Shown here one piece after another: positions 34,020-37,000 of a DNA stretch of 64,000 nucleotides. The notes under the pieces were generated by a model. It was not told the DNA's origin and searched no databases. It saw only the letters and a program-made list of their open reading frames with translations. Location of the stretch: positions 29,574,001 through 29,638,000 of the forward strand of contig NC_135769.1 in assembly GCF_052425735.1 (NCBI RefSeq), in the 5' to 3' direction. Made by a program: the position numbers and the translations under genes. This DNA comes from Oculina patagonica. Taxonomy: Eukaryota. Position 1 is the first letter of the stretch. Each line of letters opens with the position of its first letter.

Positions 34020-37000
34020 GTGATCCCGCAAATGGAAAGAAAAAAATCTTGGCCTGATCGAAGGCTTCTTTACTATAACCAAAAAAATTAATTTTTGCAT
34101 TAAACTAACGAACAGTAATTAAGAAAAATCTTGTGCGGCTTTTGATGTCACGAACCAATCAGATACCATCTTTTAGTAGAGAGCGTGCAGTAAACGTTTT
34201 GCGCCCATGTGAAATTTGTTATTCAGATTGTTCGCCGGAAAAGAAAAGAGGCTTAGCGATTAAAGAGACTATGTCACAGGGATTTCGCAGATTTTTGGTC
34301 TAAACTGTTTTAAAATTAGGTAGGCAACTGAACTTTACACTTAATAAACATTATCTTTGAACATCGAAAGGAATATAAACCTTAATTTGAGGATAGATAT
34401 GAAGCTACGGGTATAAATATCGATATTTCGAAGCCGCGTGAAAACAACTTCAAAACGTTAGCCTAAGCTTTAATATAGCAATTTTTATAAGAATGGACTA
34501 TTATTTTTAGGTTTCCTGCGACACAAATGTAAATTGGCGGTTCAAAGATCAGTTCAAATCCGTGACAAAGCCCTTTTAAGCGAACGAATTAAAGACCGTC
34601 ACTATGTTTACACCGGACCCGTTCCGACTGGTTCCAAATGGATCTTGTCCGAAAATATTCCTTCTTTATTATTTACTACACATCGCTGATCCTGGCTGTA
34701 TGCAGGACGCATGTCACATATCAACCTAGTAAATGGCCCAGCTCACAACGAGTCTCTCGTAGCTCAGTTGGTTAGAGCGCCCAACCGGTATCTGGGAGGC
34801 CATGGGCTCGATTCCTGTCGGGGACTCCGATTTTTTCTTTGTCCCACACTCGTGTCATGTTGAATAATTTCTTCACTTTTTATCACCGAGCTTGAAATTT
34901 ACCATCTTTGTTATTTACTAATATTCCTTCTATTTACACGGGACCGTTCTGGAACCGGTACGTAACGGAACGAAATGGATCCAAAATGGGATCTGCTGTT
35001 TTGCACTTTTAGTTATGGATCCTTACCGGACTGATCCAGATACAACCACTTAAGTGCCAAGTGTTTACATGGAACCGTTTTGGAACCAGTCCAGATCGGT
35101 TCCAAACGATCCCATGTAAACAGAAGCCGATCAGATCCTGTTCGGTGTGTTTGGATAAATTTGGTGCATGAGTTCAGTTCCGCGATTTTGATTTTGTGTT
35201 AAGTGATAGGAACAGCGCAGAGGTCTTAAAATAGGATGCAAATAAATATAACCCGGCCCCATGAGACTCAGAAAACATCAACGTGTTCTGAGGGAAATAA
35301 AAGGAATATAGGGGGAGATTTCGGTTTATGAAAGTGTTTTAGGAACACCTGCTGTTTTAGAAAGTGTTTTAGGAAAAATCTTCCACCATTTCGGTTTGTT
35401 TGTTTGAGTCATATTAAGCAACTGCTAATATGCGCAGTTTACAATAATCGTTTGAAGCTAGAATTGTACTTCCCGCTACAGATATGCAAACAAACTCTTG
35501 ATGGAAAATTTCCAAACGCAACGCCAACGCGAAAAGTTATTTTCTCGGCAAATGTCCTAAGACTACTCGTTGAAATGAACACAAAGGAGAGTAAATGGAT
35601 ACTTTTTCAGCTCAGACACATTATTATAAAGAATATACCTTTTATAAGCATCATGAAAATTCTTATTCTTGTAGTGGCAACTTTTTCGAATGACACATTT
35701 AACCCAAGCGTTTAAGGGTTTTTTTACAGTTGGTCCTCAAGTTCCATTTTGTTTGGGTTCTTTTGTTAACCCTACTATTTACTGCTGGCGAAATAAAAAG
35801 CTTCGACGCGCTTTTCTTGAGATTTGTCATGTAAGACGGCCAGAAAACAGAGCACCAGACATTGAGATGATAGAAATACAACGCCATCGACCTAAGATTC
35901 AGCCTTCAACTTGTGAGGCTTTTTCAAAGGCCGTAGGCAGCCAAGAAGCAGTTTTGCTGTCATTTAGTCATCTGAAAGCCGAAGAAGTTGTTCATATCCA
36001 GGAAGTGGACACATAAATCTTGTTAATAGCACAATTTAATTGTCGAACTTGAATGTTTAATATTTCAACCTTTAATGTGAATGAAGGGAAATTGTTATCT
36101 ACAAACTGTTGTTAAAGATGATACGAATAAATATATCTAGATTCGTAGAATTGCGTTTTGTTTTGTTTTGATGTTTTTTTCTCATGTTAAACGTGATTTG
36201 AGTTTACCAAAAAGTAGTGAAATAATGTTCCCTCGGTTTATTTTAAAAATGGGTCGATAAAGGTTTATAACGTGTTTAAAATAAAATGCTGTAGATCGCG
36301 GTGAAATTATAGGATTCGGATTTAAATGGTGGAAGCAATGCTAAGGCAGGTGTTTAATCGTGGAAACAAGAAAACGCGGGGGCAACTTTAGTGAAAACTA
36401 TTTCTAGTTGTAAAAAAAATCTGTAATAGCATTTAGAAATATTTCGTTACATGTAAAACAGGCGCTTTGATAATGTTTTGAGGTACCTTAGGCGGCAGTT
36501 TTCTAAAATTGAGTATTTTTAAACCACATACACCCTTAGAACTCCTTTTACCTTACGGAGGATTGATCTTTAACAATGATCTTTCTTTTATAGGATATTG
36601 ACTGTTAATTGTTGGGCCCCACAAAACTCTTGGCAAAAATTCACTGATGTATTTCTCAAAACCACTTTCCTTTTAAATATTTTTCTTAAATTTTGTTTAC
36701 AAGAAGTCCAAACAGTAAACTTTGACATAGGCAAATGAATAAAAAGTATTTGAAAAATCTTTGAATAAAAACAAAGAATACCACAATCTTTGCAACTGTA
36801 ACCACTGTTGCTAAGTGATCGTTTTGGCGCAGTTTGGCAAAAAATCGAAGATTGCCTTCCGACAGAATACTATTTTTAAAACCCGCGTCCTGAGACTAAA
36901 AACCACGTCGAGCCTCGTTTGAAAATGCAATTCATGAAAATCATACCAAAAAAATCTGTTAAATGTTTTTTGAATGTTAGCATCTTTGACACAAAATTAA

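Follow-up and report, generated by a model that had tools for sequence, protein, structure and literature searches.

A 254-bp insertion in the genome of the coral Oculina patagonica is very probably an aged and lightly damaged copy of a non-coding retroelement, made by the reverse transcriptase/endonuclease of a Penelope-like element (PLE). Animal retrozymes and Penelope pseudo-LTRs have hammerhead ribozymes as a defining feature. Here we describe, from the window (the whole 64,000-nucleotide stretch of DNA that was analysed) and from the genome around it, a hammerhead descendant that has no catalytic core, exists in thousands of copies and bears textbook Penelope insertion scars. Each 259-bp unit of the family carries an internal tRNA-Thr-like module, and at least 2,170 such modules are present genome-wide. 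These observations suggest that Penelope-dependent passengers are able to carry a complete Pol III-type tRNA unit, and that the family is a PLE counterpart to short interspersed elements (SINEs) and to Cassandra-like LTR elements.

Layout of the insert in the window

The insert occupies window positions 34666 to 34919 and lies between two copies of a 12-bp target-site duplication. On direct reading its features, all on the forward strand, are as follows.

34654–34665 (+): left target-site duplication, aatattccttct, an exact 12/12 match to 34920–34931
34666–34678 (+): terminal redundancy, corresponding to the final 13 nt of a preceding unit's tail (unit positions 247–259)
34679–34724 (+): 5′ region with the hammerhead relic, in which the bulged helix II hairpin is kept and the CUGAUGA and GAAA core is missing
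34750–34829 (+): tRNA-Thr-like module with gagt...actc leader/trailer pairing, assigned from Rfam, from its boxes and from ARAGORN on canonical units
34831–34836 (+): T6 run resembling a Pol III terminator, 8–10 nt 3′ of the tRNA-like part
34837–34878 (+): post-tRNA segment ending ...ttcttcact, up to the inner 3′ end site, at unit positions of about 215–221, where arms and arrays at other loci stop
34879–34920 (+): 42-nt 'tail' between the alternative 3′ ends, with the terminus ...ttatttact(a), delimited from 3′-end positions across loci
34920–34931 (+): right target-site duplication, aatattccttct

The insert begins with ttattatttacta (34666–34678) and ends with tctttgttatttacta. This terminal redundancy spans 13–16 nt with one mismatch, the longer figure including the tct that overlaps the duplication. 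The window copy is single-armed and runs from unit position 247 through one full unit to position 259; its start point recurs in at least two more insertions (L017 and the + arm of L024). Sixteen nucleotides of the unit's 5′ region are missing from the window copy, a loss revealed by comparison with a paralogue about 51 kb upstream that retains them. A search for an empty site found the flanks of the insert only at the window locus and at the paralogue, which also bears the insert. The A box, tagctcagttgg, is located at 34760–34771, about 95 bp into the insert, and the B box, ggctcgattcc, at 34805–34815, with one mismatch to the consensus. The original prediction, which described a 254-bp insert with a 12-bp duplication, the same sequence at both ends, A and B boxes well within it and a T6 run immediately behind the tRNA-like part, was thus accurate on each of these points.

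Copy anatomy and the Penelope-like elements of the genome

A 41-nt tRNA-like pattern gave 2,170 matches in the genome and its reversed control gave none. The matches are dispersed over the chromosomes, and both spacings of about 259–262 bp and inverted pairs are frequent among them. A similarity search with the unit returned 105 scored matches among 1,248 candidates, and the anatomy of the family (hereafter family A) was read at 30 loci chosen by similarity score, which makes the sample non-random. These loci contain head-to-tail arrays that measure between 1.05 and more than 4 units, the 5′ starts of which are scattered over the whole unit. Sixteen of the insertions are two-armed; in all of them the (−) arm precedes the (+) arm and the 3′ ends point outward, and the point at which the arms meet is different in each copy. 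The target duplications at the family loci are exact and vary between copies from 7 to 13 bp. Sequence identity is 97.0% within arrays and 96.9% between loci, a comparison that is uninformative if the history of the family is star-like.

Copies terminate in ...TTATTTACTA or ...TTCTTCACTA, and the two alternative 3′ ends, separated by 42 nt, fall at unit positions 214–221 and 257–259. At other loci the inner end adjoins the target duplication directly. Single-armed insertions end at positions 257–259 in 10 of 12 cases; in all 12 canonical two-armed insertions one arm ends at 257–259 and the other at 214–221, a one-sidedness of the tail that would have a probability of 2.4 × 10−4 were the ends independent. 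At the 5′ side, 3 of 45 ends lie at the tRNA head (unit positions 92–96), and 12 of 45, against an expected 4, lie at positions 163–185, immediately 3′ of the module (P ≈ 9 × 10−4 for an interval that was picked after the data had been seen).

The published signature of PLE insertion consists of partial tandems, an inverted 5′-truncated copy and a 30–40-bp tail that is often present at one end only (PMC8557442), and that tail is as long as the interval between two internal sites at which reverse transcription starts (PMC11167929). The family reproduces this signature, and the terminal redundancy of the window copy is thus best read as a 5′-truncated second unit: because the copies are 5′-truncated multimers, one that reaches slightly into a second unit starts and ends with identical letters. 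The anatomy of the 30 loci therefore upholds the earlier proposal of a non-autonomous, circularly permuted, partly tandem element with Penelope-type insertion (PMC8557442, PMC11167929); starts are not uniformly placed at the tRNA head, and no LINE-type tail was seen.

The window itself contains a candidate for the class of element that mobilises the tRNA-bearing family.

5061–7168 (+): autonomous Penelope-like element with a 647-aa open frame (RT and GIY-YIG family context)

This PLE has a minimal hammerhead at about 7024–7055 and alternative 3′ ends at about 7106–7111 and 7164–7168, and its family displays two 3′ ends about 58 nt apart as well as a (−)/(+) pair with a long and a short arm. 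The genome holds 3,437 PLE candidates, including copies 97–99% identical to the open element of the window. A BLAST comparison of the unit and of the hammerhead element described below with 30 PLE loci out of these 3,437 candidates yielded nothing significant; the only match, the 9-nt motif CTTTATTAT, lies close to the 3′ terminus of the window PLE and is not significant alone.

In the mechanism that we favour, a PLE reverse transcriptase/endonuclease copies the family into the genome. The sequences show reverse transcription beginning at either of two internal sites, at unit positions of about 217 and 259. Both ends of the cut target often prime synthesis, which leaves inverted arms placed head to head, one of them bearing the 42-nt tail. 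PLEs are known to cleave and extend both target strands, and their hammerhead mutants still insert in vitro (PMC11167929).

Hammerhead relic and tRNA-Thr-like module

The closest identified relative of the family's 5′ region lies elsewhere in the window. Its insertion anatomy is that of the family: an arm is inverted, only one of the arms has a tail, which measures 40 nt, and the target duplication is 11 bp long.

24068–24430 (−): hammerhead-bearing short element

Positions 14–62 of the family consensus align to the hammerhead of this element (24120–24195, minus strand) with a score of 33, compared with 16.6 ± 2.8 for shuffled sequences, none of 1,000 of which reaches that score (z of about 6). 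The hammerhead likeness first noticed by eye in the insert is therefore firm for the consensus, whereas for the window copy alone it is marginal, its score being reached by 25 of 1,000 shuffles. When the family and the hammerhead element are compared piecewise, similarity is significant in the hammerhead region alone. Comparing the two tails gives a marginal result (17 of 500 shuffles), and a by-eye likeness in the end-1 region was unsupported by the piecewise comparison and was set aside.

A search of both strands of an array against all Rfam families at E values up to 10 gave tRNA and no ribozyme match, and a search over the window at gathering scores returned tRNA only; microRNA-family matches on the inverted-arm junction were rejected as hairpin artefacts. 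Since Rfam was blind to the true minimal hammerhead of the window, we added a core-motif scan with positive controls. The CUGANGA...GAAA core is absent on both strands from the 33 units examined, and both control hammerheads were detected. No site in the genome matched a pattern in which an intact hammerhead precedes the tRNA-like head, and the relic was not found in the sister family B. Judged from these alignments, the 5′ region of the family is a relic of a minimal hammerhead from which the catalytic core has been deleted. It descends from a minimal-hammerhead element of the same genome, its core having been removed by small deletions. Because the core is lost and yet more than 2,000 modules exist, self-cleavage is dispensable for the amplification of the family, which lends natural genomic support to the dispensability of hammerhead cleavage for insertion in vitro (PMC11167929).

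The tRNA-like module occupies unit positions 93–168, and is thus internal to the element rather than at its 5′ end. Rfam scores the window copy (34756–34822) at 34 bits, compared with a gathering score of 29, and canonical units at 41–48 bits. ARAGORN calls canonical units as tRNA-Thr(GGT) and leaves the decayed window copy uncalled. The consensus boxes of the family are TAGCTCAGTTGG and GGTTCGATTCC. On direct reading the consensus departs from a functional tRNA gene, with a C at anticodon-loop position 33 and an acceptor stem that has mismatches or a slipped register. tRNA finders will list more than 2,000 tRNA-Thr genes in Oculina patagonica that are false, and repeat annotators are prone to place the family wrongly among SINEs or satellites.

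Family B comprises at least 812 candidates and has the same layout as family A. In a comparison that used a single copy of family B, the tRNA block is 73% identical between the families and the remaining unit 10–43%. The leader/trailer pairing and the T run are conserved and both boxes remain consensus-like; the T6 run, which is kept in the family A consensus, has a T8 run as its counterpart in family B, and each is the sole run of four or more T in its unit. Considered as a Pol III signature, the avoidance of further T4 runs is not significant in either family (P of about 0.19 for each). By eye, the pairing of the anticodon stem is held through two double changes between the families. A pile-up of family B 5′ starts at query position 10 was discarded as an artefact, because the query copy begins at that position and alignments are unable to extend further. 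As the tRNA-Thr-like block is the part best conserved between the sister families, sequence comparison suggests that the module is kept under selection.

Role of the module and relation to known systems

Our best guess, which we hold at even strength, is that the module works as a Pol III/TFIIIC promoter–terminator unit, and it may in this way maintain source copies in a transcriptionally open state. With a T6 run immediately behind the promoter, Pol III would stop before the reverse-transcription start sites, and the module alone therefore cannot make the template, unless termination is leaky. The retrotransposition template would instead be a longer transcript that passes through the T run and beyond unit position 259.

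A purely passive role of the module is possible, if rather doubtful. The tRNA-like block and its oligo-T resemble a primary Pol III transcript or gene that was captured, with leader, tRNA and oligo-T placed between the relic and the 3′ end region, and retrotransposition of host sequences in trans has been reported for PLEs (PMC8557442). The block could thus have entered once, when the template was switched to a pre-tRNA or to a SINE transcript, and have no role in the life cycle, an account to which we give tentative weight only. Against it stand the conservation between families A and B, which in the block, including the T run and the leader/trailer pairing, is far above that in the rest of the unit, and the match of both boxes to their consensus despite the divergence of the two families.

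Use of the module as an RNase P/RNase Z cutting signal is less likely. In the fullest form of this idea the module replaces the hammerhead, and RNase P and RNase Z cut multimers into unit-length, possibly circularised templates for the PLE; we consider this quite unlikely. Indirect evidence speaks for it: families A and B both retain the cloverleaf, with anticodon-stem changes that are paired, the module is the block best conserved between them, 5′ ends are enriched directly after it, and the family amplified despite the loss of the hammerhead core. However, intact tRNA-like modules are present inside every array, including in the last unit before the 3′ end, which argues against efficient processing. 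RNase P and RNase Z products would carry 5′-phosphate and 3′-OH ends, which are not known to be joined by RtcB, the ligase used by retrozymes. RtcB circularises hammerhead-cleaved RNAs (PMC7229834). The conserved T run would be superfluous under such processing, and subfamily variants are mixed within two of seven arrays (L013 and L030), which argues against the copying of a single monomer circle. Moreover, the unit is not rod-like: folding of the whole family A unit in linear and circular form revealed no unusual structure (z = −1.4 to −1.7). That either RNase P/Z cleavage or Pol III termination sets the ends of the Penelope-copied RNA in place of the lost hammerhead is, in our estimate, distinctly unlikely. 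If the replacement were real, a retrozyme-type life cycle would run on a cellular tRNA pathway instead of a ribozyme, and more than 2,000 tRNA-Thr-like Pol III units in the genome would be potentially active.

The A and B boxes, the tRNA match and the tandem copies would fit an ordinary LINE-dependent tRNA-derived SINE, or a satellite that arose from such a SINE through unequal crossing-over. This origin is nevertheless very improbable: the tRNA part is internal rather than 5′, a poly(A) or LINE-like tail is absent, the terminator lies within the unit, the more than 2,000 modules are dispersed with a target duplication for each insertion, and the inverted arms with their one-sided tail already contradict this reading. 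A DNA transposon derivative, whether a MITE or a Helitron-associated tandem repeat, is almost certainly wrong, since the imperfect inverted termini of two-armed copies (TAGTGAAGAA... at the start and ...TTATTTACTA at the end), which resemble short terminal inverted repeats, are offset by the variable meeting point of the arms, the variable duplication length (7–13 bp) and the presence of target duplications around single-armed copies with scattered 5′ ends.

A Penelope-mobilised passenger thus remains the preferred reading, and it places the family beside several known systems. Metazoan non-LTR retrozymes (Cervera & de la Peña 2020, PMC7229834; Li et al. 2026 preprint, 10.64898/2026.07.22.740005) likewise consist of short, non-coding and AT-rich units of 150–400 bp that form short tandem arrays at dispersed sites, with target duplications of more than 4 bp and a proposed dependence on PLEs, and the 5′ region of the coral family is homologous to a hammerhead element. 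Unlike these retrozymes, the coral family has its core deleted in 33 of 33 units and carries an internal tRNA-like Pol III unit; its unit is not strongly self-paired, and it is known here from genomic DNA alone. As summarized in PMC2770079 (citing Ferbeyre 1998 and Laha 2000), the Schistosoma repeats Sm-alpha and Sj-alpha have a tRNA-like part, scored as tRNA-Gln pseudogenes by tRNAscan-SE, together with a hammerhead motif. The coral family resembles them, irrespective of the order of the parts, in uniting a tRNA-like part and a hammerhead motif in a high-copy satellite- or SINE-like repeat. Going by the same summary, it differs from Sm-alpha, the hammerhead of which is active, in having a relic, and also in phylum and in tRNA type (Thr).

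With the pseudo-LTRs and non-autonomous derivatives of PLEs (Chlamys elements such as MRC1; PMC8557442) the family shares partial tandems, multicopy head-to-tail insertions, inverted 5′-truncated copies and a one-sided 30–40-bp tail, together with two internal reverse-transcription start sites (PMC11167929). It differs from them in carrying a tRNA-like gene unit and in a 3′ end that has no significant similarity to the 30 PLE loci examined. Classical tRNA-derived SINEs also combine internal A and B boxes with high copy number and a lack of coding capacity, whereas in the coral family the tRNA part is not 5′, the terminator directly follows it, and the copies, which have no LINE-type tail, are tandem, permuted and inverted. 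Finally, Cassandra, Helenus and Ajax, as characterized in PMC10886601, resemble the coral family in having a small Pol III gene-like sequence in the repeated part and in being non-autonomous without being LINE-dependent SINEs. By that account these elements are of the LTR type and are mobilised by LTR retrotransposons, whereas the coral family bears the insertion scars of PLEs.

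Structure and age of the window copy

Direct reading of 34654–34931 confirmed the observation made in the original prediction, whose interpretation was partly supported. A 254-bp insert lies between two copies of an exact target duplication, starts and ends alike, and contains internal A and B boxes followed by a T6 run:

34654–34665 and 34920–34931: exact 12-bp target duplication
34756–34822: tRNA-like segment (Rfam tRNA, 34 bits; gathering score 29)
34760–34771: A box, within the Rfam tRNA-scored segment
34805–34815: B box, within the Rfam tRNA-scored segment
34831–34836: T6 run, 3′ of the tRNA-like segment

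The first 13 nt of the insert reappear at its 3′ end with one change (16 nt if the tct overlapping the duplication is counted). Decay is evident in the window copy, which shares 93% identity with a canonical unit, lacks 16 nt still present in a paralogue about 51 kb upstream, and yielded no tRNA call with ARAGORN. The paralogue has the same insertion with 1.8 kb of flank (94.7% identity to the window), and the insertion is therefore older than the local duplication. The search for an empty site among scored matches to the flanks found none. Around the element, window positions 33629–35417, 35414–35663 and 37778–38179 match L002, the locus on this contig about 51 kb upstream. A 250–400-bp piece of L002 matches two separate window places at 98% identity, and thus the similarity reflects a local segmental duplication or repeat.

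A search of the same genome (529 Mb, 14 large contigs) with the element returned 105 scored matches out of 1,248 candidates. A 41-nt tRNA-like pattern, allowing up to two mismatches, matched 2,170 times (reversed control, 0); the matches listed are dispersed over contigs C1–C2, often 259–262 bp apart or in close inverted pairs. The canonical unit of this family, family A, comprises 259 bp (locus L013, minus strand, 2018..1760); canonical units are called as tRNA-Thr(GGT) by ARAGORN and score 41–48 bits with Rfam tRNA. The 258-nt consensus of 33 full units shows about 98% uniformity throughout, and family A is therefore young.

Insertion anatomy and Penelope-like elements

In 30 genome loci, picked by similarity score, family A copies are arranged head to tail in arrays that range from 1.05 to more than 4 units, with 5′ starts distributed across the entire unit. 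The terminal redundancy in the window is simply a copy extending 13–16 nt into a second unit; locus L017 and one arm of locus L024 share its 5′ start point. Sixteen insertions in these loci are two-armed, in (−)(+) order, so that both 3′ ends face outward. The 3′ ends fall at two sites 42 nt apart, at unit positions 214–221 (...TTCTTCACTA) and 257–259 (...TTATTTACTA). All 12 of the two-armed insertions whose ends are canonical carry this 42-nt tail on one arm and lack it on the other (P = 2.4 × 10−4 under independent ends), a pattern for which selection of loci by similarity score fails to account. Single-armed insertions mostly end at 257–259 (10 of 12), and whole structures are flanked by exact target duplications of 7–13 bp.

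Some loci are more complex. At L005:1501–3069, about 620 bp of unrelated sequence lies between the two arms of a single insertion, which have the duplication ACATTACTT in common; either the event was composite or the intervening DNA inserted later. At loci L004 and L012, which lie about 15 kb from each other on contig C5, two-armed insertions and flanks are both identical, a sign of a further local segmental duplication that includes a copy. On the head-to-head junction at L013:2321–2485 (minus strand), Rfam matched the plant microRNA families MIR847 and MIR1094 with low E-values, below gathering thresholds; we rejected a microRNA gene there because the long and perfect hairpin of the junction produces such hits artefactually. 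Such junctions could yield hairpin RNAs if transcribed.

Insertions of Penelope-like elements (PLEs) are partial tandems forming pseudo-LTRs, often with an adjacent inverted 5′-truncated copy and a 30–40-bp tail, often at one end only (Craig et al., PMC8557442); family A has corresponding arrays, inverted arms and a one-sided 42-nt tail. In vitro, both strands of the target are cut and then extended by a PLE protein, which begins reverse transcription at two neighbouring internal sites; the distance between these sites equals the tail, and insertion persists with hammerhead mutants (Frangieh et al., PMC11167929). The genome contains 3,437 PLE candidates, and the window holds an autonomous one:

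5061–7004: open 647-aa frame of a PLE with a minimal hammerhead (element extent 5061–7168)

At least 10 copies elsewhere are 97–99% identical to this PLE, which was thus probably recently active. Its copies have two alternative ends (window ~7106–7111 and ~7164–7168), the spacing of about 58 nt being the PLE tail, and its family includes one (−)/(+) pair with one long and one short end. The insertion scars of the short hammerhead element at 24068–24430 are the same, its inverted arm bearing a 40-nt tail. Because the anatomy of family A fits the PLE signature and these two elements show like scars, we file family A, on its anatomy, as very probably PLE-mobilised; a search among 30 PLE loci identified no specific autonomous partner.

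The hammerhead relic

Over positions 14–62, the family A consensus is colinear with the minimal hammerhead of window 24120–24195 (minus strand), and the alignment scores 33 (shuffles, 16.6 ± 2.8; 0 of 1,000 reach 33). The window copy alone is marginal (25 of 1,000). Helix II and the bulge are retained with changed pairs, CUGAUGA is reduced to CUGAU, and GAAA is lost. A core scan of both strands of the 33 units found no hammerhead while recovering both real hammerheads of the window, and an Rfam ribozyme search gave no match. The predicted remnant without a catalytic core thus holds at the family level. Tail-to-tail similarity to the hammerhead element (17 of 500 shuffles reach the score) is suggestive only.

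The hammerhead element family (24068–24430, minus strand; loci L031–L040; 1,185 candidates) consists of an arm of about 220 bp and an inverted arm, the latter having the 40-nt tail in only some of the copies; the window member lies between copies of the 11-bp duplication TACCTGAATTT.

It is very probable that family A is both PLE-mobilised and hammerhead-derived. Of the predicted Penelope-mobilised, retrozyme-like element, the mobilisation agrees with the insertion anatomy.

The tRNA-like module and published precedents

The family A module combines A and B boxes that match the consensus, pairing of leader with trailer, and a T6 run 8–10 nt downstream; these features make it resemble a complete Pol III transcription unit, or a primary transcript that was captured. 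Sister family B (type copy L005:621–866; at least 812 candidates, including partial tandems) shares this layout; its module is tRNA-Thr(AGT)-like, its T-run is a T8, and no hammerhead relic was detectable in it. At L005:560–866, the unit is about 246–251 bp, the T8 run lies inside a hairpin and the 5′ region is strongly structured (fold z = −4.6). Units of both families end ...ATTATTTACT. Between family A and one family B copy, the tRNA block is best kept (73% identity; other segments 32%, 43% and 10%) and two anticodon-stem pairs are changed on both sides, suggesting that selection acts on the module in source copies.

Because the T-run would halt Pol III upstream of both sites where reverse transcription starts, the template must be a read-through transcript or the product of another polymerase. 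Just 3′ of the module, at unit positions 163–185, lie 12 of 45 5′ ends (4 expected; P about 9 × 10−4, for a region chosen post hoc). Arrays contain uncut tRNA-like modules and 2 of 7 (L013 and L030) mix subfamily variants, which speaks against a single monomer circle being copied.

Our literature search, which covered papers, found none on a hammerhead-dead, tRNA-bearing PLE passenger. Metazoan retrozymes are tandem units carrying hammerheads (PMC7229834), and a 2026 preprint connects retrozymes to PLE pseudo-LTRs (10.64898/2026.07.22.740005); neither mentions a tRNA module, whereas family A has one. The nearest precedent is the Sm-alpha repeat of Schistosoma, which is SINE-like, scores as tRNA-Gln and carries an active hammerhead (PMC2770079); family A instead pairs a tRNA-Thr-like module with a hammerhead relic.
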